This document shows positions 1,622 to 40,682 of a DNA stretch of 41,710 nucleotides, piece after piece (the stretch's first letter is position 1; each line of letters begins with the position of its first letter). Source of the stretch: Macrostomum lignano (lineage: Eukaryota); NCBI GenBank assembly GCA_002269645.1, contig NIVC01002912.1, positions 1-41,710 of the forward strand. The letters are read 5' to 3'. The position numbers and the translations under genes are program-made. The notes beneath the pieces are model-generated. The model saw nothing but the letters and a program-made list of their open reading frames with translations, was not told the origin of the DNA and made no database searches.

Positions 1622-3311
1622 TCAGTAGGCCGAGTTGGCCGGACTGCTATTGACGGCGTCAAACGCATCAAACAGCAGCTGCTGCTGCTGCTGCTGCTGC
1701 AGCCCGCGCGGCCCGCCGGCTTTCCACCCTGAAGTCGAACGTCGCCCATGTCGCCGGGCGCGAACTGCTGCTGCTGCCTGCCAGCGCTGCTGGAGTACAT
1801 GTGCTTCACCAGCTCGCGCTCGAAGCTGTTCAAGTCTTCGGAGCGCTCCTCGTCTTCGTGGTCGGCGGTTTCCGTCTTTTCGTTGCCGGCGTAGGGAGAT
1901 CGAGACGACAGCAGCTGCTGGCGGTGCTGCTGAAACTGCTGATGCTGCTGCAGTTGCTGCTGTTGAAGCATCTGCTGCATCAGCTGAGGCGGCATCTCCT
2001 GGCCCGGCATGCCGGACTCGTCAAAGTCGGTCATGATGTCGGAGCTGCCGGTAGGAGGCTGGGCGGCCGCCTGCTTCATCCGCGGCATGCGCGCTGCTGC
2101 TGGCCTGGATGTAGCTGTTGAGCGAGGGCGGCTTGCTGAACGGCTGCCGTTCTGCCGCACCGCGCAGGAGGGCGCAGTCGTCGCCAACGCTGCGCAGCTC
2201 GGAGGCGGGCACGCGCCCAGCTCCTGTCAGATTGATGGTGCTGTCCTGCTCTTTCTCGTTGATGATGCTGATGTGAGTCTTGATGGCCAGCAGAGAGTCA
2301 GTTGGTAGGGCGACATTCTCCGGCAGGCAGCTGAAGATCTTCTGCAGATGCTCCACAGGCAGTCGCAGAAACGTTTTTCGCCACTTGGTGGCTGTGAGGG
2401 CTCGGCGAATGATGTCGGCCAGGGAGTTTCATCGGGCCGTTTTTAACCTTGCAGTGCATGCGGTAGTACAGGCCCATCAGCAGTGCGATGGCGCAGTCCT
2501 GGTCCATGATCATGGGGTCCAGGCTCTGGATGCGGGCAACAAACCCGGCCTTGGTGTCGGGCGTCGGCTGCAGCTCAAGGAAGCAGCGGTTTTTGAACAG
2601 CGTCTCCAGCGCGCTGATCAAGTTGTGCGACTTGCGACACTCCGGGTCCTCGTAGTACGCCACGCGGGCGATGCGGCGGAACAGGCTGATCTTCTGGCCG
2701 AACCCGTCATCGTCCAGCACCTGCGGCTGCCAAATCTCCGGCCGAATGGTGATGAGGCTCTCGAGCAGGCTGCTGATATTGATGTTGAGCCGCGTCTTCA
2801 TAGTCTCGGTGCCGTAGTGGAGAGTGTCGCGATATTTGAATACCTTTTGGCTGGCCTTGCTCTCATAGTGCAGCTCGAATGGCCGGCTGATGTCCAATGT
2901 CAGCGCCTGTCCGTCCTTCATGAACGGCGGCGCCACGCTGCTCAGGGAGCTGATGGCCTCGTAAAACTCCCGCCTGATGGCGACGCACACGGGCAGGATC
3001 TCGACAATGTCGCCGCCGGCAACGCCTCGGCTGAATACGTCTGTGGCGAAGCTCTTCTGGTGCCCATGGTTGACTCCGCTGCGCAGGATGATCTCCACCG
3101 ACTTCTCCTCCTTGAGGTAGATGGCCAGACTCAGCGGGTTGAGGTACAGCACGGCGTTGCGGTGAAACATGGACTGAGAGTCGCGCGAGTCGTTCCCGAT
3201 GAGGTCTGGCTGGTCGGCGATCTGGAAGATCTGCTGGAACAGCTCGGGCCTCTCCTCACCATGGTGGTGAGACGGTGGTGCGACCTGCCACGGATCATGT
3301 TGATCATCCAT
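1622..3311 (-). CDS. Unrecognised protein with two degenerate ankyrin-like motifs, a possible SOCS-box-like segment and a Gln-rich C-terminus; frame broken by ~3 single-base shifts
   Basis: ORF 2298-3500 contains NPLSLAIYLKEEKSVEIILRSGVN and ILPVCVAIRREFYEAISSL. Protein-like sequence continues in ORF 2021-2356 (SLADIIRRALTATKWRKTFLRLPVEHLQKIF) and ORF 1531-2187 (MTDFDESG...QQQQ). GC-rich codon style. Acceptor-like TTTCAATTAG|CAG at 3450-3445; first in-frame ATG at 3311. Boundaries are inferred. Confidence 0.6.
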
Positions 3312-3709
3312 TTCGTGTACGGGTGATGGCTGCGTAGGAACGGTGGTATGTTCAGGTGCGAGTTGGGGAACTGCGGCGGCAGCGGGCAGCTGGTCATCGT
3401 TGCTGATCGGCGGAATGCAACTTGGCAGTACTGCGGTTTGCAACCTGCTAATTGAAATTATTTTAATTATAAATAAAAGATCAAAATTATATGGCTGCAT
3501 TGTTTAAACAGCTGCTGACCATAGATGCAAAACCGGGTACAGTGCAGCAGCCTCGTGTGCTACGCTTGGGCAATGCGTTTAAGCCATAGAATTAAGCTCA
3601 TTTACATTTATTCTGCTAGTATAAATAGCGACGACTCGTCACTGCGGGGAGAAATATTTCAATGCTATTTGATACCCGTCACTGGGTTCGACTCCGGATG
3701 CTGTCACGT

Positions 3710-5523: not shown

Positions 5524-6081
5524 TTAGACATCGGCGCTGAGCAGAGCGGACTCAAGCACCCGCTGCCTGCCGGGATGAATGGTGACCCATCGGGGCTCCA
5601 GCGGGTCGGCAGAATAGCCGTACACCACCAAGGAGCCACGGCAGACGGCCACAATCTCGCGCATGCAGTCCTCGTTGATCAGATCGGAGACCAGCAGGCG
5701 AAGGATTCGCAGAGCCGGCGCGAACACCGACTGCGGCGCGGCAGCTCCAGCTCTTCGAAGTCTTCGTCTCCGCCGCTGGACTCGCCGTCGTCGTCTGAGT
5801 CGTCGTTGTCGTTGCCGACGTAGGAGGAGTTCCCGTCCGGCGACCGTTCGCCACCGGCGCCACCGCAGGCGGCGGCAGCGACGGAGGCTCGTCGGCGCCA
5901 TCTGGCTGCCCGCTCGGCCAGCCGCAGTCGCAGCAGGGCGAGAGTCCGGCGCCACGATGGCAGGTCGTGAATGATGGGCAGGAATGGCCGGCTGGTGATC
6001 TGCTTCAGGCCGCTGAAGTCCGCCTCCTGCAAGCTCGGACAGGCGGCCAGCACGGAGGAGACGCCGCGGTCTGTGACGAAC
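5524..6081 (-). CDS. LRR protein, exon 3 (terminal); one frameshift near 5740
   Basis: Acceptor CCCGCTCGCAG|G at 6082. The phase-2 junction joins ...DVSFNP to FVTDRGVSSVLAACPSLQEADFSGLKQIT. The C-terminus LRILRLLVSDLINEDCMREIVAVCRGSLVVYGY...ADV* lies in the shifted frame. Confidence 0.8.
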   Translation of the reverse strand, partial: VRHRPRRLLRAGRLSELAGGGLQRPEADHQPAIPAHHSRPAIVAPDSRPAATAAGRAGSQMAPTSLRRCRRLRWRRWRTVAGRELLLRRQRQRRLRRRRRVQRRRRRLRRAGAAAPQSVFAPALRILRLLVSDLINEDCMREIVAVCRGSLVVYGYSADPLEPRWVTIHPGRQRVLESALLSADV

Positions 6082-6124
6082 CTGCGAGCGGGACGCGTTT
6101 TCTTAGAAACGGGATGGTCTACAG

Positions 6125-6695
6125 ACATCTATGCAGCTTTCTAGTGTCCATAGATCTAAACGGCAGTATCTAGTGTCTATAGATCTAAATGGTGGTATCT
6201 AGTGTCTATAGATCTAAACGGCAGTATCTAGTGTCTATAGATCTAAATGGTGGTATCTAGTGTCTATAGATCTAAACGGCAGTATCTAGTGTCTATAGAT
6301 CTAAACAGCAGTATCTAGTGTCTATAGATCTAAACAGCAGTATCTAGTGTCTATAGATCTAAATGAGAGTATCTAGGGTCTATAGATCTAAATGAGAGTA
6401 TCTAGGGTCTATAGATCTAAATGGTGGTATCTAGTGTCTATAGATCTAAATGGTGGTATCTAGTGTCTATAGATCTAAATGGTGGTATCTAGTGTCTATA
6501 GATCTAAATGGTGTTATCTAGTGTCTATAGATCTAAATGGTGGTATCTAGGGTCTATAAATCTAAATGAGGGTATCTAGTGTCTATAGATGTAAATAGTG
6601 GTATCTAGTGTCTATAGATCTAGCTCGTAAATGAGAGTATCCAGTGTCTATAGATCTGTGAAGTGTACACTGCTTGCCTAACGGAGTGTACATCT
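6125..6695. repeat. 29 bp satellite (GTCTATAGATCTAAAYGGCAGTATCYAGT), first block
   Basis: Tandem copies visible; degenerates toward 6695. Confidence 0.95.
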
Positions 6696-6698
6696 TAA

Positions 6699-7929
6699 CA
6701 GTAGAAAGACCATAGGGGGTGTATTTCAAATACACACTTTTCCTTTGTCTGGATCTCCGAAAATATTCAACCAATTGCCATCAAAATCCAGAACACGGGC
6801 TAAAATTTTCCGCTCTATTCGATGAAGCAACTTCGAGAATCACGAAAAATCGGCATCGTCGAGATATTCAACGATTCTCCTCGGGTGTCCGGTGGCAAAA
6901 ACCACCAACATTGGAAAATTTTTTCTGCTAGCAAAATCTCACCATGAAACCACGTCGGCTCAACAAACTATGCATATCAGGCGCAGGGACCTTCTCTCTC
7001 GGCATCCCAGGCAACAGGGTCCCCCCCATCACCGTCTGGAGCATCGGCGGCGACCGTCGGGACCTTCAACAAAAGCACCCGATCGGCATCTCAGAGACAG
7101 CTGCGCTCCCAAAACTGAAATGAAAGAATCCACGTCTGCATGCAGCATTCAGTCAGTAGTCAGCCTTGATAGAAAAATCACGATGTTGGCGGTGTCAGCT
7201 CGTCGGGGCCGCAAGGTGCACTCCGTTGAAGGTCCCGAAGGTCGTCCAGACAGAGCTGAATGCTGAACATGGTACAAAAGCACTGTATAATACGCAGACA
7301 TGTCTGGTTTGGTGCCTTGATAAAAAATCACGATTTTGGGGTGTCAGTTCGTCAGGGCCGCAATGTGCACTCCGTTGAAGGTCCCGAAGGTCGCCTGTAT
7401 GTCTACAGGTCAGCCTAGAGGGTCGCCATCGTCCATTTCATTCACCGATTGTGACTACTGACTGAACTCCGCATGCAGACGTGGATTCTTCCATTTCAGT
7501 TTTGGGAACACAGCCGTCTCTGCGATGCCGATCGGGTGCTTTTGTGGAAGGTCCCGACGGTCGCCGTCGATGCTCCAGACGGTGATGAAGGGGACCCTGT
7601 TGCCTGGGATGCTGAGAAAAAAGGCCTCTACGACAGATGGACCCAGATTATTGAGCCAATATGGATTCACCATAAAGGTTTATACAGTGTAGTGTTGGTT
7701 GTCCTTGCCACCAGTGTCTTCGACAAGAATCGTTGAATATCTCGACGATGCTGACGTCGGATGACTTTGAAAGTTAATTCGTTGGAAAGGGGGGAATTTT
7801 GATCCATGCGGTGGACTTTTACGAAAATCGGTAATTCGGTTTGCGAGCTATCGTGAAATGGGTCGTGTGTATTTGAAATACACCCCGTGGTCTTTCCCTA
7901 TGGGGAAAAATAGCGTGCTCTTTATTCTG
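6699..7929. mobile_element. Non-coding foldback/TIR element (~1231 bp): long imperfect inverted arms, CAG...CTG termini, TTAA flanks
   Basis: TTAA at 6695-6698 and 7930-7933. Termini CAGTAGAAAGACCA vs reverse complement CAGAATAAAGAGCA. GGGGTGTATTTCAAATACACAC at ~6716 is inverted at ~7866. Arms 7003-7162 and 7452-7615 are near-identical inverted copies. The spacer holds two ~85 bp direct repeats. Confidence 0.75.
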
Positions 7930-7933
7930 TTAA

Positions 7934-8181
7934 ATGTCAGCATTTAGTGTCTAGATTTAAACGGTAGTATTCAGTCTCTATAGATCTAGACTGTGGAGAC
8001 TTCTAGTGTGCATAGATCAAAATTGTAGTGTCTAGTGTCTATAGATCTAAATGGTAGTAGCTTGTTTCAATAGATCTAAATGAGAGTATCCAGTGTCTAT
8101 AGAACTAAATGGCAGTATTTAGTGTCTATAGATCTAAATGGCAGTATCCAGTGCCTATAGATCTAAATGAGAGTATCCTGT
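7934..8181. repeat. 29 bp satellite, middle block
   Basis: Same GTCTATAGATCTAAA unit, more degenerate. Confidence 0.9.
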
Positions 8182-9857
8182 TTACCAGCAGACTACGCTG
8201 GAACATACGTCCTCTGCAGCTCTACGGCAGAGATATTGCCTTCGCGCACCAGACCAGATGTCTCGGGGTCACACTTGACCACCGGCTCAACTGGTCCTTC
8301 CACGTGAAAGCAAAAGCCAAGCGTGCCTCAGCCATCCTGGCCCAGCTCCGACGAGCACTTGGCACTTCTTGGGGTCTATCCCCAAAGCGGCTTTGGTGGA
8401 TCTATACTTCCGTAGTTAGACCTGCCATTACGTACGCCTCTGTTGTCTGGGTTAGCGCTACCCAGGTCAAAAGCCATGCAGACCTGCTCAACACGATCCA
8501 AGGCAGAGCGTGTAGGCTTATCTGCAACGCCACCAGGTCCACGCCCTTTGCTGGCATGGGGGCCTTCCTTAATCTACCGCCTCTTGACCTCTTCGTCAGG
8601 GGTGAGGCGGCTAGATCGACGCGGCGTCTAATTGATGCTGGCGTCAAATTCATTCACATGAGAGCACCTGCTAAGCGGAACCTTGTCCCGCATAGCGACC
8701 TGTGCCTCAACTTTCTCAACGAGTGTCAGGCCAATCGCGTCTTCACCGATGGCATTGCCTCAACGCTCAACCTGAGACAGCGCTACTCCGTAGCTATCGA
8801 CTCGCGCGATAACATCAATGACCAATGGAACCTTGGTGAGCTTCATTGCTACACCGACGGTTCTAAGCAGTCAGCCAACACCGGCTTTGGTGTTGGAATC
8901 TTTCTGAACGGGAGGGTCATCGCTACCCACGCTCAATACACTGGGTCAACTCCAGTGTTTTCGAAAATGAAGTTCTGGCCATCAGCTCCTGCACTGCAGA
9001 GCTTCTCGCCACTGGCGTTACTGGTAAGAACATCATTTTCCATTCGGACAGCCAAGCTGCCTTGCACGCCATCAGTGGCTGCAGCACCAACTCTGCTACA
9101 GTCCTTGACTGTATCAAACTCCTCAATGTGTTGGGTTCCGCCAACAAAATTACCCTTAAGTGGGTTCCGGGGCATGTGGGGATCCGAGGAAATGAGCTGG
9201 CTGACACCCTTGCAAAAGTTGGTGCCTCCGGCTCCTCTCTCGGCCCCGAACCTCTTGTCCCGATTCCTGGCTGTGTCATCGACTCGCGCATCAAAGCGTG
9301 GATCAGGACTCAGCACCGCTCGACTTGGGCGAACCGCACGGAACTGCAGGCAATCCAGAGGCGCTGTCCCTCAGCCCTCTCACCAGCTCCGGAAGCTCCT
9401 CTTGCGCCTCTCGCGCAGAGACATCCGGGCTGCCACCATGACCCTCTCTGGTCACGGCTGCTTCTCCAGGCACCAGTACCTGCAGGGCAACGCCACCAAC
9501 GCCACCTGTAGTTTCTGCAACTCAGGTGACGAAACCGCTGAGCATTTCGTCAGCATCTGTCCCGCCTTCACGCGGGCCAGACTCACTTACCTCGGGCCAC
9601 ACACATCTATTACTGAAGCGTGCAAACCCGAAAACTTTAATCAGCTCATGCGCTACCTTCGGGCCACCCGCAGGGCTGAACTCTCCTTTCCAGAGAGCAC
9701 TATAGCTGCTGGCGACACTGGGGACCTCCCTGGGCGGCGCCAACCCTCCGTCCATAGCGACGCGTCGGCCGTTCAGGGATTTGCGGAATGGGCGCCCGCG
9801 CCTTCCCGCTGTGTCCCCTCCGGGACAGCCCTGCAGCTAAGTCAAGTAAGTCAAGTC
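8182..9857 (+). mobile_element. 5'-truncated non-LTR retrotransposon with RNase H (LOA/Lian-like): RT thumb region, RNase H, CCHC finger
   Basis: TRCLGVTLDHRLNW and WGLSPKRLWWIYTSVVRPAITYASVVW. RNase H motifs YTDGSK, HSDSQAAL and KWVPGHVGIRGNELAD (middle part in the frame of ORF 9062-9511). CSFCNSGDETAEHFVSICP. Target duplication ATCCTG(T) at 8175-8181 and 9858-9864. Tail AAGTCAAGTAAGTCAAGTC. Clade call comes from motif memory. Confidence 0.88.
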
Positions 9858-10662
9858 ATCCTGTGTCTATAGATCTAAATGGCAGTATCTAGTGTCTATA
9901 GATCTAAATGAGAGTATCCTGTGTCTATAGATCTAAATGGCAGTATCTAGTGTCTATAGATCTAAATGAGAGTATCCTGTGTCTATAGATCTAAATGGCA
10001 GTATCCAGTGTCTATAGATCTAAACGGCAGTATCCAGTGCCTATAGATCTAAACGGCAGTATCCAGTATCTATAGATCTAAATGATAGTATCCAGTGTCT
10101 ATAGATCTAAATGATAGTATCCAGTGTCTATAGATCTAAACGGCAGTATCCAGTGTCTATAGATCTAAACGGCAGTATCCAGTGTCTATAGATCTAAACG
10201 GCAGTATCCAGTGTCTATAAATCTAAACGGCAGTATCCAGTGTCTATAGATCTAAACGGCAGTATCTAGGGTCTATTGATCTAAACGGCAGTATCCAGTG
10301 TCTATTGATCTAAACGGCAGTATCCAGTGTCTATAGATTTAAAAGGCAGTATCCAGTGTCTATAGATCTAAACGGCAGTATCCAGTGTCTATAAATCTAA
10401 ACGGCAGTATCCAGTGTCTATAGATCTAAACGGCAGTATCCAGTGTCTTCTATAGATCTAAACGGCAGTATCCAGTGTCTATAGATCTAAACGGCAGTAT
10501 CCAGTGTCTATAGATCTAAACGGCAGTATCCAGTGTCTTCTATAGATCTAAACGGCAGTATCCAGTGTCTATAGATCCAAACGGCAGTATCCAGTGTCTA
10601 TAGATCTAAATGGCAGTATCCAGTGTCTATAGATCTAAACGGCAGTATCCAGTGTCTATAGA
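9858..10662. repeat. 29 bp satellite, third block
   Basis: About 27 homogeneous tandem copies. Confidence 0.97.
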
Positions 10663-10698
10663 CATTATACAACCGCTAACAACAGACCGGCAACTCAC

Positions 10699-11490
10699 GG
10701 GTTGAAGCTGACGTCAAGCTTTACCAGCTGCTGCAAGTTGGCCGCCACGCTGAACATCAGCCGGTCGGTGACCAGTCGGGAGCCTTTGATGAAGGACAAA
10801 TCCACCGATTCCAGTTTCCGACAACCGGAAATCACCGCCTCCAGGTCGGTGCCGTCGGCCAGGTTGCACCGGCAGGCGAAATGGCGCAATTCCAGCAGCT
10901 CCGAGCCGATGGCGCGGCAAGCCTGCGGCGTCAGCCGGGGACACCAGTTCAGCGACAGGCAGCGCAGTCGGTCAGCCGCATCAGCGAGGCGAACAGCTGG
11001 CCAGCCTGCTCATCGGCGAGTTCTTCCCAGCCGTCAAGATGCAACGAGTGCAGCTGGTTGAGCTGGCCAAGGAATACCAGATTGACTGGCTCAGTGAGCA
11101 GCAGCTCGCTGAGATCGAGGCCGCGCAGTTCGACAAGTCGGCAGAGCGGCTCGGCGATGCCAGCCAGCTGCAGGCGGCAGCAGCGCAAGTCCAGCCACAC
11201 CAGGCCGGGGCAGAGGCTGCACACGGCGGCCAAGTCCGCCTCCGTGAGGCCATCAGAGCTGGCCAGACTCAGCGAGCGAAGGCAGCGGCCGCGCAGGGCG
11301 CAGAGCTGCAGCAGAGACTCCCGAGCTGAAGACCAGGCGGTGCAGAAGGCCAAGTCCAGCTCCGCCAGGCCCTGCTCTGCATCCGGTTCTTCATCATCTG
11401 AGCCAGAGTCTTCTTCATCACTGTACTCATCTTCAGCTTCGTCGGCGCAGTCAATCAGCTGATCTTCATCATCTTTGGCGTCTTCGAAAT
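10699..11490 (-). CDS. LRR protein, exon 2, 3' portion (downstream of LTR insertion); frameshift near 10970
   Basis: Acidic tract EDAKDDEDQ...DEE, then Cys-containing LRRs (LRSLSLASSDGLT, LVWLDLRCC, LHSLHLDGWEEL, LESVDLSFI, LVKLDVSFNP). Donor CC|GTGAGT at 10698. Confidence 0.85.
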
Positions 11491-11804
11491 TGTGACATTG
11501 TGGCGATATGCTAGTGTATTTTTATTATTGCAATATTATGCTTTGTGCATTCTTAGTTAGTTAGTATTTGCGTGCGCGCTGATTAGCTAGTGTGTTTCAG
11601 TGCATGTGCACTGCGTCGGGTTGTTTGCGTTTTACGCGTGGCTAGCATGGTGGGGTCTGAGCAGTCAGGCTAACCACCCTCTTTAGTCCTAGGGTTGATG
11701 AATAAGAATAAACAAGTCATATAAGAGCCCAGTTGTGTGTACTGGCTCTCCACGTTCAACTTTCCTACGCATTCACTACAAGCCTTTAGCTTCAATATAT
11801 TACA
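11491..11804 (+). repeat. 5' LTR (314 bp)
   Basis: Begins TGTGACATTG, ends TATTACA; identical by eye to 15819-16132; contains AATAAA. Confidence 0.97.
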
Positions 11805-14800
11805 ATGGCGACGAGGATGGGATTCCAATACTAACTGCCAATACTAACATTGAGGTCTGGCTGGAACGGCTCGACCATTACTTTACCTGCAAGGAGGTAA
11901 AGGAAGAAGCTAAAGTGGCCACACTCGTCACTGCCATCGGTGAGGAGGCATATACCGTGTTGAGAAACCTGTGTCTACCTGCCAAGGTCTCCGACAAGTC
12001 TCTGGCCCAGTTGACCAAGATTCTGGAGGACCACTACGCTCCAAAGCCGTCCGAGTTGGCAGCCAGATTTCGGTTCCAAAGACGCCTGCAGCAGCCTGGC
12101 GAGAGCCTTGCCGAGTTTGTTGCCAGCCTGAAGGCCTTGTCAAGTCACTGCAATTTCAGTGCTTCCCCGTGTGAGCACTGTCACTTCGGCGGCACTCTAG
12201 ATGAGCGACTGCGAGACCAGCTGGTTTTCGGCCTGCACAGCGATGCCTACCGAGCGAAGCTGCTGGAGGAGAAAAATCCCACCTTCAACTCGCTGCAGGA
12301 GAGAGTTCTATCCCTCGAGGCAGTGGAGCGGTCATCATCGGAGATGGCGCAGAAGTCAGCAGCACAAGTAGCCCAGCTGCACGCTCACCAGCTGAATAAG
12401 CGCCAAGGACCCAAGCCAGCGCTCGAAGGTTCGCAGCAGCGCAAGGGCGGTGGCAACAACAGCAGAAGCGGAGTCGGCAGCAGCGGCAACACCGGCAGTG
12501 GCACCTGTGCAAGCTGCGGCGGTGCTCACAGTCGCCAGCAGTGTAAGCTGCGAGACGCTAAATGCCACGCGTGCGGAAAGACGGGCCATATTCGCAAGGT
12601 CTGTCGCTCAGCCAAGCTGCATTTTCTACAAGAAGTGACACCGACACCACCACCGGAAGCCTCCGCGCAGCTGCCGATTTTTGCCGTGCAGCCGGCTGGT
12701 GGCAACGCGGGTCCGACGGTGCAGCTGCAAGTCAATGGCCAGCCATGCCGGTTCGTCATCGATACGGGCTCCGCCGTCACTCTGATGCCCGAGTTTCTGC
12801 AGCTCATGCTTCTACCGCGGCTCTCCATGTCACCGTCCGTTGCTGTCCTACGCACCTTCACCGACGAGCAGTTCCGCCCTCTCGGCCAAGCGTTGGTCTC
12901 CGTTCAGCAAGATGGTCAGCAGCTGCAGTTGCCCCTGCTGATCGTCAAGCACGGCGACACGGCCCTGCTCGGTCGCGACTGGCTGGCCAAGCTGCGGCTA
13001 GACTGGCCGAGCATCATGGCGCAGGTTCACGCCGTCCACGACTCCGAAGACATCGGCAGCATCGTCAAGGAGTTCGCACCAGTCTTCGAGGACGGCCTAG
13101 GCGAGTTCCGGCACGGCCAGGTGCGGCTTCAAGTCTCCGAGGACGCTCAGCCCAGGTTCTTCAAGGCGCGGCCGGTCCCCTACGCGCTGCGCGAGCGCGT
13201 CGACGCCGAACTGCAGCGCATGGAGTCCAGTGGCATCATAACCGCCGTGAAGCACAGCGACTGGGCTGCGCCGATCGTGCCGGTCGTCAAGAAGGACGGC
13301 AGCGTTCGGATTTGCGGAGACTACAAGCTGACATACAACGCGGCGAGCAAGCCGGAGCACTACCCGCTGCCCCGCATCGAGGACCTCTTCGCCAAGCTCG
13401 GCGGCGGCTGCAAGTGGACCAAGCTCGATCTGTCCAACGCCTTCTTGCAGCTTCCTCTGGCCGACGACAGCAAGGCGTTTCTCACTATCAACACGCCCAG
13501 AGGCCTCTTCCAGGTCAATCGCCTCCCATTCGGCATAACGAGCGCCAGCGCGATCTTTCAACGCACCCTGGACACCCTGCTGGGAGACCTGGATGCCGTC
13601 CAAGTCTTCGTCGACGACATTCTGGTCACCGGCAGCACCCTGCAACAGCACAAGAGGAACCTGGCGCTGGTCCTGCGGCGCTTGAAGGACGCCGGCCTGC
13701 GGCTCAACAAAGAGAAATGCAAATTCTTCGAAGACTCTGTTGAGTACCTCGGCCATCGGATCGACGCCAGCGGACTCAAGCCGCTGCCGGACCGGGTCGC
13801 CGCCGTCCAGGACGCGCCAGCACCCAAGGACGTCAGCCAGCTGCGCTCGTTTCTGGGCATGCTAGCGCAGTACTGCAAGTTCCTGCCCAACTTGTCTACC
13901 GTCCTGGCGCCGCTCCACCAGCTCTTGGCCAAGAACACCCGCTGGTCATGGGGGCCACCGCAGCAACAGGCATTTGCAGAGGCCAAGCGGCTGCTGCTCG
14001 AGTCACCGGTTCTCGTGCACTACAATCCGAATCTGCCGCTGCGATTAGAGTGCGACGCCTCTCCCTACGGCCTGGGGGTCGTCTTGACGCACCGCATCGA
14101 CGACAAGGACTGCGCGGTCGCCTTCGCTAGCCGCAGCCTAACAGCAGCGCAGCGCGGCTACTCCCAGCTGGACAAGGAGGCGCTGGCCATCATGTTTGGT
14201 CTGCACCGGTTTCACCAGTTCCTCTATGGCCGGCGGTTCACCATCGTCACCGACCATCTGCCGCTGCTGGGTCTGCTGGGCGAGCGCAAGGGCATTCCGG
14301 CACACGCGGCCGCCCGGATGCAGCGCTGGGCCATTCGGCTGTCGAGCTACGACTACACGCTGGAGTTCCGGCCGACCGAAAAGCATGCCAACTGCGACTC
14401 GCTCTCGCGGCTGCCGCTGCCGCACCTGTTCGAGGAGGAGCCGGCCGTCAACTCGCTGCTGCTCGACGAGGGCTCCGGATCGGCCATCACGGCGCTGGCG
14501 GTGGCGCGGCACACTAGGACAGACGTCTCACTCGGTCGGGTGCTTCGCTGCTTGCAGACCGGCGCGCCCATCGGCGACGACCTGAGCGACTTCGCCCGGC
14601 GGCAGTCGGAGCTGTCAGTCGACCAAGACTGTGTCCTGTGGGGCGCAAGGGTCGTTGTGCCTACAGCGCTGCGTCGACGCGTGATCCAAGAGCTACATCA
14701 GGCGCATCCCGGCATCAGCAGAATGCGCGCCCTGGCTCGCAGCTACGTGTGGTGGCCCGGCCTCGACGGCGATCTGGAAGCTGCGGCCAAGTCCTGCCGC

Positions 14801-15792
14801 ACCTGTCAGCTCAACCAGCCCGACCCGCCCAAGGCGCCGGTGCAACCGTGGCCTCTGCCATCCGAACCGTGGGAGCGCCTGCACATCGACTTTGCCGGTC
14901 CGGTCGACGGTCATACGTACCTGGTGGTAGTCGATGCTCATAGCAAGTGGCCGGAGGTCCAGCGGATGCGCGGTACAACGTCGGCGGCCACCATCGCGGC
15001 TCTGCGGGAGATGTTCGCGCGCCAAGGCATTCCGCGCACCCTGGTGTCCGACAACGGGCCGCAGTTCGCCTCCGCCGAGTTCGCCGAGTTTACCCGGGCC
15101 AACGGCATTCGTCACGTGTTCTCGGCGCCGTTTCATCCCGCCACCAACGGCCAGGCCGAGAGGTTTGTGCAAGTCCTGAAGCGACATCTGCTCAAGAGCG
15201 GCCACTCTGACGTCGAGCTTCAGCGACTGCTGCTCAGCTACCGCAACACCCCACACAGCATCAGCGGCGCAGCCCGAGTCAGCTGCTCATCGGCCGTCGG
15301 CTTCGCTGCCGTCTGGACCTCCTGGCACCGTCGCTGGCTGACGACGTCCAACGGCGGCAAGAGCGGCAGCTGCAGGGACGCAGACCAGCGCGCGAGTTTC
15401 AGCCGGGTGATCACGTCCTCCTCCGCGACTACAGCGCCGGCGCGAAAGCCGGCGACACGCCACGCTGGGCTGAGGGTGTCGTCACGGGCGCCGGCAGCCG
15501 CAACTACACGGTTGACTCGGAGCGAGGCCAGCACTTCCGGCACGCTGATCAGCTGGTGGCAGCCCGCGCTGACTCCGCCGACACCGTCCATCCGCCGCCT
15601 GCTACGGATGACGGCGCCGCCCCGAGTGACAGCGGCGTGCAAAGCGCTGACGCCGCAGCCGTCGCCGACACGGCCTGTGGGGCGTCATCCGGCACTGACG
15701 ACGAGCATGCGAGCGGCGTGCGACACGAGCCGGGCACTACACGGCGGTACCCACTGAGGGTTCGAGGCCCACCTCAGAGACTTCAGCTGTGA
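11805..15792 (+). CDS. Gag-Pol polyprotein (single ORF); apparent 1 nt deletions near 11825 and 15270
   Basis: Two zinc knuckles (CASCGGAHSRQQC, CHACGKTGHIRKVC). Protease VIDTGS. RT DLSNAF and FVDDIL. RNase H CDASPYG, DKEALAI and TDHLPL. Integrase HHCC, HIDFAG, SDNGPQF and NGQAERFV. After 15270 the shifted frame reads SPSQLLIGRRLRCRLDLL...RRYPLRVRGPPQRLQL*. Confidence 0.95.
11806..11825 (+). promoter_or_regulatory. Primer-binding site complementary to the 3' end of tRNA-Ser(GCU)
   Basis: TGGCGACGAGGATGGGATTC, 1 nt after the LTR, is the reverse complement of GAATCCCATCCTCGTCG-CCA, the 3' end of metazoan tRNA-Ser(GCU) as I recall it. Confidence 0.85.
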
Positions 15793-15808
15793 AGGGGAGA
15801 ACTGACTC

Positions 15809-15818
15809 AGGGGGGAAG
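15809..15818 (+). promoter_or_regulatory. Polypurine tract
   Basis: AGGGGGGAAG immediately before the 3' LTR TG. Confidence 0.9.
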
Positions 15819-16132
15819 TGTGACATTGTGGCGATATGCTAGTGTATTTTTATTATTGCAATATTATGCTTTGTGCATTCTTAGTTAGTTAGTATTTGCG
15901 TGCGCGCTGATTAGCTAGTGTGTTTCAGTGCATGTGCACTGCGTCGGGTTGTTTGCGTTTTACGCGTGGCTAGCATGGTGGGGTCTGAGCAGTCAGGCTA
16001 ACCACCCTCTTTAGTCCTAGGGTTGATGAATAAGAATAAACAAGTCATATAAGAGCCCAGTTGTGTGTACTGGCTCTCCACGTTCAACTTTCCTACGCAT
16101 TCACTACAAGCCTTTAGCTTCAATATATTACA
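15819..16132 (+). repeat. 3' LTR (314 bp)
   Basis: Identical by eye to the 5' LTR; followed by TSD GAAAT. Confidence 0.97.
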
Positions 16133-16284
16133 GAAATTGTCTGCTTCAGAGTCGTCTGCAACGTCCGAGTCGGCGAGGCTGCTGGCGCTCTCGCTGGCGC
16201 AGCTGTGATAGCTGGAGCCTCCGGACTGCGGCTTCGGCTGCGCGCTGTCCGCTGCGGGTGGCGGATTTGGTGTTGCTGCGGTAG
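16133..16284 (-). CDS. LRR protein, exon 2, 5' portion (upstream of LTR insertion)
   Basis: Acceptor CTTCCCCCTTAG|CT, phase 1, matches the exon 1 donor. Reads ATAATPNPPP...DDSEADNF and joins in frame to EDAKDDED at 11485 once the element and one TSD are removed. Alternative acceptors at 16296 and 16308 are possible. Confidence 0.82.
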
Positions 16285-16810
16285 CTAAGGGGGAAGCTAA
16301 TAGGGTAGCTAATAGGGTAGTTAACGGATAGCTAATGGGGTAGCTAATAGGGTAGTTAACGGGTAGCTAATGGGGTAGCTAATAGGGTAGTTAACGGGTA
16401 GCTAATGGGGTAGCTAATAGGGTAGTTAACGGGTAGCTACTGGCAACTAAGGGGCAGCTAATGGCAACTAAGGGGTAGCTAATAGGTAGCTAAGGGGAAA
16501 GCTAATAAGTCTATTATAGGGTAGCTAATGGGTAGCTAATGGTAACTAAGAGGTAGCTAATGGGTAGCTAATGGTAACTAAGAGGTAGCTAATGGGTTAG
16601 CTAATGGTAACTAAGGGGTGGCTAATGGGTAGCTAATGGTAACTAAGAGGTAGCTAATGGGTAGCTAATGGTAACTAAGGGGTAGCTAATGGGTAGCTAA
16701 GGGGGAAGCTAATGGGTAGCTAAGGGGGGAGCTAATAGGTAGCTAATGGGTAGCTATTGGTAACTAAGGGGTAGATAATGGGTAGCTAAGAGATAGCTAA
16801 ATGGTAGCTT
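16285..16810. repeat. Minisatellite of 11-12 bp units (GGGTAGCTAAT[A/G]) with higher-order variants, filling most of LRR intron 1
   Basis: Tandem copies visible up to the splice acceptor. Confidence 0.93.
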
Positions 16811-16870
16811 ATTAGTCTGTGCCACAAGACACTCTGTTGTCCCTCATCAAGCCATCCGGGAGGCACTCAC

Positions 16871-17681
16871 CCTGTCTGTCCATCGCAATCGGCTCAGTCG
16901 CCCGCTCGTCTTCGCCGACAGAAGTCGCCTCGGAAATCTCCGCCAAGCAGTCAAACAGCGGCCGGAGCTCCGCCAGATGCGTGGCCGTCAGCGAGCGCAG
17001 GTGCCGCCCAGCGAAGCGGCACAGATCCCGCAGGCCGGCCGCCGTCACCCGGGTGCCGCTGAGATTCACCCGACGAAGCCGGCCGCCGCCAGCTGGCAGG
17101 CTGGCGAATGCGGAGTCGCAGACCAGCGGACAGGCGGCGGCGGACAGGCGGCGGAGGCGGCGCCGGCCGGACAGCAGCACGCAGCGCAGGGCGGCGCCGG
17201 TAAGGCTGTCGCACTGGTCCAGCTCAAGGCAGCGCAGGCGGGGCGCCAGTCGGGGCAGGTCGGTCAGCAGGCGCTTGTCAAGCACCAGCTGGGAGCACTG
17301 AGCCAGGCGGAGTCGGCGAAGACCCGGACAGGCGGGCAGAGCGGCGCGCAGGTCGGCCGGGGCCAGCAGGCAGCAGGCGGTGAGGTCCAGCTCGGTCAGG
17401 CCGGGCCCGGCCGCCAAGTCGCGCAGGTGTCGGCCGCGCACGGCGCGGGGCTGCGCGGCGCTCAGATGGGCCAGCAGCTGTCCGGCCAGGCGCCAGTCCT
17501 CATTGTGCAGGCCGGGCGCCGAGGCGGCGCCGCGATGATCCCGAGCCTGGTCGGCGAGTTCGGCGAAGCACAGCGAGTACAGGCTGGGCGGCGGGGCTCG
17601 CGCCGTGGCGGCGGCGGCGGCAGCGGCGGCCGCATCAGCGAAGGAGTCGTCGTCTTCGTCTGAGTCACTGATGTCGGCCAT
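16871..17681 (-). CDS. LRR protein (RNI-like, AMN1/FBXL-type repeats), exon 1, with N-terminal BC-box-like motif
   Basis: MADISDSDEDDD...PPSLYSLCFAEL; LRRs LTELDLTACC, LRRLRLAQCSQL, LRCLELDQCDSL, LRRVNLSGTRVT. Donor CAGG|GTGAGT at 16870. No F-box recognised. Confidence 0.85.
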
Positions 17682-17727
17682 GCGCGGCCAGCCGGACGCT
17701 GAAATGCGGGTTGCGATGGCGTGAAGC

Positions 17728-21889: not shown

Positions 21890-23718
21890 AGATCCCAGAT
21901 CCTAGATCCCAGATCCTAGATCCCAGATCCTAGATCCCAGATCCTAGATCCCAGATCCTAGATCCCAGATCCTAGATCCCAGATCCTAGATCCCAGATCC
22001 TAGATCCCAGATCCTAGATCCCAGATCCTAGATCCCAGATCCTAGATCCCAGATCCTAGATCCCAGATCCTAGATCCCAGATCCTAGATCCCAGATCCTA
22101 GATCCCAGATCCTAGATCCCAGATCCTAGATCCCAGATCCTAGATCCCAGATCCTAGATCCCAGATCCTAGATCCCAGATCCTAGATCCCAGATCCTAGA
22201 TCCCAGATCCTAGATCCCAGATCCTAGATCCCAGATCCTAGATCCCAGATCCTAGATCCCAGATCCTAGATCCCAGATCCTAGATCCCAGATCCTAGATC
22301 CCAGATCCTAGATCCCAGATCCTAGATCCCAGATCCTAGATCCCAGATCCTAGATCCCAGATCCTAGATCCCAGATCCTAGATCCCAGATCCTAGATCCC
22401 AGATCCTAGATCCCAGATCCTAGATCCCAGATCCTAGATCCCAGATCCTAGATCCCAGATCCTAGATCCCAGATCCTAGATCCCAGATCCTAGATCCCAG
22501 ATCCTAGATCCCAGATCCTAGATCCCAGATCCTAGATCCCAGATCCTAGATCCCAGATCCTAGATCCCAGATCCTAGATCCCAGATCCTAGATCCCAGAT
22601 CCTAGATCCCAGATCCTAGATCCCAGATCCTAGATCCCAGATCCTAGATCCCAGATCCTAGATCCCAGATCCTAGATCCCAGATCCTAGATCCCAGATCC
22701 TAGATCCCAGATCCTAGATCCCAGATCCTAGATCCCAGATCCTAGATCCCAGATCCTAGATCCCAGATCCTAGATCCCAGATCCTAGATCCCAGATCCTA
22801 GATCCCAGATCCTAGATCCCAGATCCTAGATCCCAGATCCTAGATCCCAGATCCTAGATCCCAGATCCTAGATCCCAGATCCTAGATCCCAGATCCTAGA
22901 TCCCAGATCCTAGATCCCAGATCCTAGATCCCAGATCCTAGATCCCAGATCCTAGATCCCAGATCCTAGATCCCAGATCCTAGATCCCAGATCCTAGATC
23001 CCAGATCCTAGATCCCAGATCCTAGATCCCAGATCCTAGATCCCAGATCCTAGATCCCAGATCCTAGATCCCAGATCCTAGATCCCAGATCCTAGATCCC
23101 AGATCCTAGATCCCAGATCCTAGATCCCAGATCCTAGATCCCAGATCCTAGATCCCAGATCCTAGATCCCAGATCCTAGATCCCAGATCCTAGATCCCAG
23201 ATCCTAGATCCCAGATCCTAGATCCCAGATCCTAGATCCCAGATCCTAGATCCCAGATCCTAGATCCCAGATCCTAGATCCCAGATCCTAGATCCCAGAT
23301 CCTAGATCCCAGATCCTAGATCCCAGATCCTAGATCCCAGATCCTAGATCCCAGATCCTAGATCCCAGATCCTAGATCCCAGATCCTAGATCCCAGATCC
23401 TAGATCCCAGATCCTAGATCCCAGATCCTAGATCCCAGATCCTAGATCCCAGATCCTAGATCCCAGATCCTAGATCCCAGATCCTAGATCCCAGATCCTA
23501 GATCCCAGATCCTAGATCCCAGATCCTAGATCCCAGATCCTAGATCCCAGATCCTAGATCCCAGATCCTAGATCCCAGATCCTAGATCCCAGATCCTAGA
23601 TCCCAGATCCTAGATCCCAGATCCTAGATCCCAGATCCTAGATCCCAGATCCTAGATCCCAGATCCTAGATCCCAGATCCTAGATCCCAGATCCTAGATC
23701 CCAGATCCTAGATCCCAG
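21890..23718. repeat. Perfect 14 bp tandem array (AGATCCCAGATCCT)n, ~130 copies
   Basis: No variant unit seen across 1.83 kb. Confidence 0.98.
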
Positions 23719-38019: not shown

Positions 38020-40682
38020 GAAGATATCAGGGAGAATCAGAGAGAGATATCAGGGAGAATCAGAGAGAGATATCAGGGAGAATCAGAGAGAGATATCAGG
38101 GAGAATCAGAGAGAGATATCAGGGAGAATCAGAGAGAGATATCAGGGAGAATCAGAGAGAGATATCAGGGAGAATCAGAGAGAGATATCAGGGAGAATCA
38201 GAGAGAGATATCAGGGAGAATCAGGGAGAATCAGAGAGAATCAGAGAGATATCAGGGAGAATCAGAGAGAGATATCAGGGAGAATCAGAGAGATATCAGG
38301 GAGAATCAGAGAGATATCAGGGAGAATCAGGGAGAATCAGGGAAAATCAGGGAGAATCAGAATCAGAGAGAGATATCAGGGAGAATCAAAGAGAATCAGT
38401 GAGAATCAAGGAGAATCAGAGAGAATCAGAGAGAATCGGGGAGAATCAGGGAGAATCAGGGAAAATCAGAGAGATATCAGGGAGAATCAAAGAGAATCAG
38501 TGAGAATCAAGGAGAATCAGGGAGAATCAGAGAGAATCGGGGAGAATCAGGGAGAATCAGGGAAAATCAGGGAGAATCAGAATCAGAGAGAGATATCAGG
38601 GAGAATCAAAGAGAATCAGTGAGAATCAAGGAGAATCAGAGAGAATCAGAGAGAATCGGGAGAATCAGGGAGAATCAGAGAGATATCAGGGAGAATCAGA
38701 GAGATATCAGGGAGAATCAGGGAGAATCAGAGAGAATCGGGGAGAATCAGAGATATCAGTGAGAATTAGACAGAATCGGGGAGAATCAGAGATATCAGGG
38801 AGAATTAAGGAAAATCAGCGAGGGATATCAGTGAGAATCAAAGAGAATCAGTGAGAATCAAGGAGAATCAAGGAGAATCAAGGAGAATCAAGGAGAATCA
38901 AGGAGAATCAAGGAGAATCAAGGAGAATCAAGGAGAATCAAGGAGAATCAGAGAGAATCAGGGAGAATCAGAGAGATATCAGGGAGAATCAAGGAGAGAT
39001 ATTAGGGAGAATCAGGGAGAATCAGGGAAAATCAGGGAGAATCGGGGAGAATCAGAGAGAATCAGGGAGAATCAAGGAAAATCAGGGAGAATCAGGGAGA
39101 GATATCAGGGAGAATCAGGGAGAATCAGAGAGAATCAGAGAGATATCAGGGAGAATCAGGGAGAATCAAAGAGAATCAAAGAGAGATATTAGGGAGAATC
39201 AGGGAGAATCAGGGAAAATCAGGGAGAATCGGGGAGAATCAGAGAGAATCAGGGAGAATCAAGGAAAATCAGGGAGAATCAGAGAGAGATATCAGGGAGA
39301 ATCAGGGAGAATCAGAGAGAATCAGAGAGATATCCGGGAGAATCAGGGAGAATCAGGGAGAATCAGAGAGAATCAGAGAGATATCAGGGAGAATCAGGGA
39401 GAATCAGAGAGAATCAGAGAGATATCAGGGAGAATCAGAGAGAATCAGGGAGAGATATCAGGGAGAATCAGGGAGAATCAGAAAGAATCAGAGAGAATCA
39501 GGGAGAGATATCAGGGAGAATCAGGGAGAATCAGAGAGAATCAGAGAGAATCAGGGAGAGATATCAGGGAGAATCAGAGAGAATCAGGGAGAATCAGAGA
39601 GAATCAGGGAGAATCAGAGAGAATCAGGGAGAGATATCAGGGAGAATCAGAGAGATATCAGAGAGATATCAGAGAGAATCAGGGAGAATCAGAGAGAATC
39701 AGAGAGATATCAGAGAGAATCAGGGAGAATCAGAGAGAATCAGAGAGAATCAGGGAGAGATATCAGGGAGAATCAGGGAGAATCAGTGAGAATCAGAGAG
39801 AATCAGGGAGAGATATCAGGGAGAATCAGAGAGATATCAGAGAGATATCAGAGAGAATCAGGGAGAATCAGAGAGAATCAAGGAGAGATATTAGGGAGAA
39901 TCAGGGAGAATCAGGGAAAATCAGGGAGAATCGGGGAGAATCAGAGAGAATCAGGGAGAATCAAGGAAAATCAGGGAGAATCAGGGAGAGATATCAGGGA
40001 GAATCAGGGAGAATCAGAGAGAATCAGAGAGATATCAGGGAGAATCAGGGAGAATCAAAGAGAATCAAAGAGAGATATTAGGGAGAATCAGGGAGAATCA
40101 GGGAAAATCAGGGAGAATCGGGGAGAATCAGAGAGAATCAGGGAGAATCAAGGAAAATCAGGGAGAATCAGAGAGAGATATCAGGGAGAATCAGGGAGAA
40201 TCAGAGAGAATCAGAGAGATATCCGGGAGAATCAGGGAGAATCAGAGAGAATCAGAGAGATATCAGGGAGAATCAGGGAGAATCAGAGAGAATCAGAGAG
40301 ATATCAGGGAGAATCAGGGAGAATCAGAGAGAATCAGAGAGAATCAGGGAGAGATATCAGGGAGAATCAGAGAGAATCAGGGAGAATCAGAGAGAATCAG
40401 GGAGAGATATCAGGGAGAATCAGAGAGATATCAGAGAGATATCAGAGAGAATCAGGGAGAATCAGAGAGAATCAGAGAGATATCAGAGAGAATCAGGGAG
40501 AATCAGAGAGAATCAGAGAGAATCAGGGAGAGATATCAGGGAGAATCAGGGAGAATCAGAGAGAATCAGGGAGAGATATCAGGGAGAATCAGAGAGAATC
40601 AGGGAGAATCAGAGAGAATCAGGGAGAATCAGAGAGAATCAGGGAGAATCAGGGAGAATCAGAGAGAATCAGGGAGAATCAG
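38020..40682. repeat. Purine-rich 10 bp minisatellite (GAGAATCAG[G/A], variant GAGATATCAG)
   Basis: 2.66 kb of tandem copies starting ~35 bp inside the intron. Confidence 0.97.

Follow-up and report, generated by a model that had tools for sequence, protein, structure and literature searches.

The locus and the inserted element

The window analysed here is the whole 41,710-bp contig NIVC01002912.1 of the Macrostomum lignano assembly GCA_002269645.1 (Mlig_3_7). On its minus strand lies a leucine-rich repeat (LRR) gene, BOX15_Mlig014984g3, with a nuclear receptor gene upstream and a gene for a protein of 591 amino acids (aa) downstream, and exon 2 of the LRR gene is split by a long terminal repeat (LTR) retrotransposon of 4,642 bp that runs on the plus strand (11491-16132). 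We are confident that this is a Ty3/gypsy element, probably of the Mag clade, which inserted recently and in antisense orientation into one copy of an FBXL-like LRR gene in M. lignano DV1.

The element has the organization expected of this superfamily (Table 1). Domain searches with Pfam placed the enzymes in the Ty3/gypsy order of protease (PR), reverse transcriptase (RT), RNase H (RH) and integrase (IN) along a single frame, and an open reading frame (ORF) without internal stops extends on the plus strand from 11735 to 15757. Pol ends 26 nt short of the 3' LTR, which leaves no space for an env gene. No further copies of the element and no solo LTRs were found elsewhere in the window. The LTR contains the motifs TATAAG (at 11720) and AATAAA (at 11707); as promoter and poly(A) signals they were rejected, because their order gives no sensible R region, and they are reported as motifs only. 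For the candidate primer-binding site (PBS), a search for tRNA genes in the window and in loci L001-L004 found none, and the only match of the PBS region to Rfam was snoRNA-like and attributable to chance (E=0.25).

Table 1. Features of the retrotransposon and of the interrupted LRR gene in contig NIVC01002912.1 (TSD, target-site duplication; UTR, untranslated region; LINE, long interspersed nuclear element)
Feature	Position	Strand	Details
TSD, left copy, GAAAT	11486-11490	.	Identical to 16133-16137; single copy in L003 and L004
5' LTR	11491-11804	+	314 bp, TGT...ACA ends, 314/314 identical to 3' LTR
Candidate PBS	11806-11823	+	TGG-initial, one base after 5' LTR; read from sequence
gag-pol gene	11805-15792	+	Single gene, broken as assembled, relative to the L002 copy and homologues
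gag capsid-like region	11843-12139	+	Weak Pfam PNMA match (E=7.6e-5), below cut-off; aligns with gag of homologues
Two gag zinc knuckles, CX2CX3HX4C and CX2CX4HX4C	12506-12604	+	Read from translation
Aspartic protease (DTG)	12713-12997	+	Pfam RVP, 21.7 bits (cut-off 20.7), and gag-asp_proteas
Reverse transcriptase (FVDD)	13289-13762	+	Pfam RVT_1, E=2e-29; match to Ty3 RT 4ol8
RNase H	13949-14350	+	Pfam RT_RNaseH_2, E=6e-31; RT_RNaseH, E=2e-29
Integrase zinc-binding domain	14657-14821	+	Pfam Integrase_H2C2, E=7e-16
Integrase catalytic core (D, D, E)	14867-15205	+	Pfam rve, E=7.5e-16; foamy-virus (PFV) integrase, E=3.5e-21; Ty3 Gag-Pol match reaches through integrase
Polypurine tract AGGGGGGAAG	15809-15818	+	Abuts 3' LTR; read from sequence
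3' LTR	15819-16132	+	314 bp, identical to 5' LTR
TSD, right copy, GAAAT	16133-16137	.	Matches left copy
Host exon 1, first LRR block	16871-17690	-	ATG 17681-17679; P0121 and P0122 map here; donor GTGAGT from 16870
Host intron 1	16252-16870	-	619 nt, mostly an 11-bp tandem array; acceptor AG 16253-16252
Host exon 2, part upstream of insertion	16133-16251	-	Ends ...SEADNF
Host exon 2, part downstream of insertion	10699-11485	-	EDAKDD..., second LRR block; donor at 10698
Host intron 2	6082-10698	-	29-bp tandem arrays and LINE-like ORF
Host exon 3	5524-6081	-	Stop TAA 5526-5524
GT splice donor at antisense end of 3' LTR	16130-16131	-	Exon end 16132; P0121 ...DNF-C-C-K... requires T (16132) plus GT (3444-3443)
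Last exon of chimeric model	3134-3444	-	5' UTR and start of next gene; acceptor 3446-3445; ATG 3397-3395, in frame

The empty site

The unoccupied form of the site is present in the same assembly. In contigs NIVC01002411.1 (L003) and NIVC01002993.1 (L004), a single ATTTC stands exactly at the site of the element and the sequence is continuous across it. The LRR proteins of these two contigs, BOX15_Mlig018667g2 of L003 (P0122, 761 aa) and that of L004 (P0271, 762 aa), read SEADNFEDAKDD across the insertion site; P0122 is uninterrupted over it (...DSEADNFEDAKDDEDQ...), and the UniRef entry A0A1I8GCW1 spans it with an identical reading. Both contigs share the neighbours of the window, namely the nuclear receptor gene upstream and the 591-aa gene downstream, and the window flanks are collinear with them over many kilobases. 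The LRR locus is thus represented by at least three near-identical copies in one assembly, one filled and two empty.

These results bear out, with the qualifications given below, each testable claim that a sequence-only reading of the window had made about the insertion, among them that the LTRs are identical and bordered by a GAAAT duplication, that the plus-strand element lies antisense to its minus-strand host in the acidic linker of LRR exon 2, and that removal of the element together with one GAAAT restores the frame from EADNF into EDAKD, as the same uninterrupted DNA and protein in L003, L004 and A0A1I8GCW1 now show. The empty-site allele, for which that reading had advised a search, was found in two contigs, and in L003 both flanks belong to a single exon of 303 codons. 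Its suggestion that the disrupted copy might be polymorphic or buffered by another copy of the gene agrees with the presence of two uninterrupted copies in the assembly.

A perfect 314-bp direct repeat with its copies 4.3 kb apart, bordered by identical 5-bp sequences and matched by an empty site that was verified in other contigs, excludes chance. The element went in by an insertion of the integrase type, with a 5-bp staggered cut at GAAAT that left this sequence in duplicate. It should be considered that the assembly was made with Canu from PacBio reads and polished with Pilon, and that 180 Mb of it are duplicated at 95% identity or more (PMC5730564). With an assembly so redundant and repeat-rich, and a short contig whose polishing is poor, one could suspect that a retrotransposon had been wrongly joined into the LRR locus as a chimera. 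However, a misjoin would not produce exact LTR termini together with two perfect copies of a 5-bp sequence found once in the empty site, the collinearity with L003 and L004 holds on both flanks for many kilobases, and the deposited transcript model makes use of an LTR base at the junction (see below). An assembly artefact is therefore very improbable, and the poor consensus of the contig does not threaten the insertion itself.

Classification and relatives of the element

In searches against solved structures in the Protein Data Bank (PDB), the best match was Ty3 Gag-Pol (7q5b, E=5.9e-98), spanning RT-RH-IN, followed by the Ty3 RT (4ol8, E=8.4e-77), and the Ty3 matches outranked the enzymes of caulimovirus type and those of retroviruses and foamy viruses. 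The element belongs to Ty3/gypsy (Ty3/Mdg4, Metaviridae). A sibling copy of 4,652 bp was located in contig NIVC01000860.1 (L002, 2687-7338), with a TSD of its own (GTTGG) and one mismatch between its LTRs (1/314); it codes for one uninterrupted, ATG-initiated gag-pol frame of 1,320 aa (BOX15_Mlig026022g1, P0001). This product is the nearest protein to that of the window copy, followed by a 62%-identical metagenome protein and then by metazoan pol proteins named 'K02A2.6-like' (40-46% identity). With Ty3 of Saccharomyces cerevisiae the element shares the order gag-PR-RT-RNaseH-IN, LTRs with TG..CA ends and the 5-bp TSD, but the similarity is distant, the host is an animal, and Ty3 has two overlapping frames whereas the sibling copy has one fused gag-pol.

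The 62%-identical gag-pol (P0002) comes from a 4,583-bp metagenome contig of the Joint Genome Institute (JGI), shows the same N-terminal gag pattern and is named in its source 'transposase InsO family protein'. It is probably a related flatworm element that was mislabelled as a bacterial transposase.

The clades of Ty3/gypsy can be separated by the presence of a single gag-pol frame, the domain order and the type of gag knuckle. The single 1,320-aa frame of the sibling copy, the PR-RT-RH-IN order (not Gmr1-like) and the CCHC-type knuckles (not of the CsRN1 type) are all compatible with Mag, and the element probably belongs to this clade. LTR retrotransposons make up 21% of the M. lignano genome (PMC5730564), and 1,928 copies have been assigned to 137 well-defined families, of which 78 are of the Mag clade (PMC12801592). 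The M. lignano Mag families (e.g. Mlig-id115|Mag; PMC12801592) resemble the element in host genome, superfamily, compact size (4.6 kb), single gag-pol frame and two gag knuckles. Transcriptional activation of LTR retrotransposons has been reported in this flatworm (PMC12801592); we found no report of insertion polymorphism in the same paper. In contrast to the heat-inducible families of M. lignano, which bear heat-shock elements, the element has no canonical one (a motif search of the 314-bp LTR found neither GAAnnTTC nor TTCnnGAA) and by that criterion is not among them.

Age of the insertion

No divergence has arisen between the two LTRs of the window copy since one template gave rise to both (0/314 differences), in keeping with the earlier claim that the insertion is recent. 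For comparison, the L002 LTRs have one difference in 314 bp, the divergence between the two element copies is 0.4%, and that between the filled and empty haplotypes is 0.44% in non-tandem sequence and zero in the exons. Set side by side, these divergences indicate that the insertion is young on the scale of the divergence among the duplicated or allelic copies of the LRR locus.

The window and L002 copies are 99.3% identical, with 19 substitutions (18 transitions and 1 transversion; 9 of the 19 at CpG) and three length differences. The transition bias between them is strong. Within the longest block free of indels, seven of the differing codons are synonymous and six are not, which may be taken as a weak hint of purifying selection on the element lineage. 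That the family may be active had also been suggested, and this stands as plausible: the sibling in L002 lies within a separate TSD, its LTRs differ by a single mismatch, and its 1,320-aa frame is unbroken.

Effect on the host message

If the frame is read on from TTC (16135-16133) into the LTR, here in antisense, it meets a TAG after exactly 44 codons. This had been claimed beforehand and holds in the sequence, but the deposited model for the contig takes another course. In this model (P0121, 417 aa), the protein continues after ...DNF with C-C-K-P-Q, which requires a splice from the very edge of the LTR into the next gene, crossing 12.7 kb and leaving out both the element and what remains of the LRR gene. 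The annotation was obtained with genome-guided StringTie/TACO on RNA-seq (PMC5730564), so that the junction 16132-3444 should rest on spliced reads.

The message of the interrupted copy would accordingly follow one of two routes, either running into the LTR up to the TAG or being spliced from the LTR-edge GT to the first acceptor of the next gene. Either route would remove the C-terminus together with the second LRR block (P0122 residues 314-761), and the 761-aa protein would no longer be made, its function being presumably covered by the uninterrupted gene copies. The prediction that the protein is cut before its second LRR block (P0122 residues ~350-600) proved correct. Also, transcription driven by the LTR and antisense to exon 1 is possible on geometric grounds. 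We further consider, as a tentative proposal that we do not favour over a plain loss of function, that the interrupted copy is not a simple null and that the LTR-edge donor gives a fusion message joining the first LRR block to the 591-aa neighbour protein. If so, any antisense exonic insertion of an element ending in ...TTACA would carry the same built-in donor.

LTR elements inserted in exons or introns, such as gypsy and copia in Drosophila and the intracisternal A-particle (IAP) in mouse, truncate the message or supply cryptic splice or polyadenylation sites. The M. lignano insertion resembles those alleles in that an element within a gene goes with shortened or chimeric transcripts, and differs from them in that two uninterrupted copies of the gene coexist with it and that the cryptic donor is formed by the very first bases of the antisense LTR. 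It is a textbook transposon allele and a new instance of a catalogued kind.

Contig quality and coding state

Several points weigh against the interpretation given above. The insertion was read from assembled contigs and the chimeric junction from the deposited model, which limits what they say about allele frequency and junction support. The placement in Mag is based on the literature (the predominance of Mag in the genome) and on hit names ('K02A2.6-like'). Identical LTRs of 314 bp bound the divergence only below ~1% (95% limit, 3/314) and give no absolute age. Finally, the contig has many single-base gaps, so that the reading-frame state of the element is uncertain: over 11.4 kb of non-tandem sequence compared with L003 there were 50 substitutions and 34 gap events, and 25 of the latter were of a single base, mostly in homopolymers, with the window lacking the base in 17 of these 25.

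The same kind of gap is found in the genes. With respect to L003, no substitutions occur in exon 3, in either part of exon 2, or in exon 1 and the DNA next to it. The host exons have two frame-shifting gaps, one in exon 2 near 10970 (CCC to CC; seen against both L003 and L004) and one in exon 3 near 5727 (GGG to GG; seen against L003). A mini-intron as the cause of the frame change in exon 2 was rejected, as the GT..AG span is only ~23 nt and L003 reads straight through. The downstream neighbour gene, which is one 591-aa frame in L003 (20492-22267), is split into five frame pieces in the window (1625-3397, minus strand). Errors left in the PacBio consensus seem a better explanation of this pattern than decay of the genes. 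It might be argued that, with three near-identical copies of which one is free to decay, the two additional frame changes in the window copy mark it as a dispensable duplicate already decaying, in which case the element would have hit a pseudogene, with no further effect. Nevertheless, a real pseudogene should gather more substitutions than indels, while exons 1-3 present none of the former and only single-base homopolymer gaps; moreover, the neighbouring gene has gaps of the same kind, and the deposited model implies that the window copy is transcribed. On these grounds, prior decay of the host copy is improbable and consensus error the likelier cause of the frame changes.

The poorer consensus of this contig in comparison with its sister contigs would also fit a lower read depth, as if the filled site were a low-frequency variant of the pooled DV1 culture and not a fixed copy on one duplicated chromosome. 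The source of the assembled DNA was reportedly the DV1 culture line, not a single animal. However, the filled haplotype has a 41.7-kb contig of its own with private non-coding substitutions (50 in 11.4 kb), which needs substantial read support, and we consider a low-frequency variant unlikely and keep to an insertion established in one copy of the locus.

With regard to the element itself, its frames were judged against the L002 copy and eleven distant homologues. By this comparison, the gag-pol of the window copy changes frame twice, once within gag and once in the part for integrase, with no stops and no large indel; the distant homologues need two frames to align with it, against one for the L002 copy, and as assembled it has no ATG-initiated frame over the whole gag-pol. 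Thus, the description of the element as full-length is sound for its structure (identical LTRs, TSD, candidate PBS and polypurine tract) and fails for its coding capacity, since a complete Gag-Pol is not encoded as assembled.

Whether these breaks are themselves errors of a PacBio-based consensus, in which case the copy would be coding-intact and autonomous, has to be weighed. One of them is a single base missing from a 4-base homopolymer, a type of gap of which the L002 copy has a private example, and with respect to the two sister contigs the window shows two single-base gaps and no substitutions in ~2.6 kb of sequence from the host gene and several frame changes in the neighbour gene. Polishing with Pilon from short reads would moreover be weak in multi-copy sequence. 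At least the single-base break may then be a consensus error. At the other break, however, the copies differ in length by more than one base and by a number not divisible by three, and the difference is not due to slippage in a homopolymer. Consensus errors do not usually take this form, and for this reason we find it unlikely that the copy is coding-intact. If the breaks are real, the window copy would have been mobilised with proteins supplied in trans by intact siblings such as the L002 copy.

Host gene and other features of the window

The block of LRRs encoded by exon 1 matched FBXL2 (6o60_C, E=3.6e-11) and FBXL17 (E=9e-6) in the PDB search, and P0122 passed the Pfam threshold for LRR_6, a type of repeat that contains cysteine (28.4 bits; cut-off 23.4). 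Pfam gave nothing useful with fragments of the host gene, and the LRR assignment required the full-length P0122 together with the PDB search. As no F-box family appeared among the Pfam hits of P0121 or P0122, the gene is called FBXL-like and not FBXL; the name 'F-box/LRR-repeat protein 20' in UniRef is no more than a label given by that source. A word-index protein search with the host N-terminus recovered only the window's own model, whereas an exhaustive search recovered the uninterrupted paralogue, with an identical N-terminus; a negative word-index result is therefore not proof of absence.

Intron 2 of the host gene contains, in antisense, a LINE-like ORF of 587 aa (8109-9872, plus strand) that gave no Pfam hit at E<=0.1. 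By its motifs we take it to resemble the C-terminal portion of a reverse transcriptase of the non-LTR (LINE) type with RNase H after it, and the long collinear alignment suggests that it is present in L003 too. The gene upstream of the LRR gene, on the minus strand from 21199 to beyond 27690, codes for a nuclear hormone receptor (zf-C4 and Hormone_recep). No Pfam family was found in the 591-aa protein of the downstream neighbour. Nineteen tandem arrays with units of 4-75 bp lie between 28 and 40682 and take up ~44% of the contig (18.4 kb); among them, a 14-bp unit is repeated perfectly 131 times at 21890-23718 and a 10-bp unit 255 times at 38026-40682, and related 29-bp units recur at 6140-6622, 7931-8178 and 9858-10662.

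Conclusions

Users of the genome should note that the insertion has made a chimera of the GenBank model BOX15_Mlig014984g3 and that the poor single-base consensus of NIVC01002912.1 breaks reading frames. The existence of at least three near-identical copies of the LRR gene matters for the design of knock-down and knock-out experiments. M. lignano is a model for regeneration and transgenesis, and a filled site with two empty counterparts in one assembly is direct sequence evidence of recent transposition, showing that a Ty3/gypsy family has moved within the recent history of the sequenced line.

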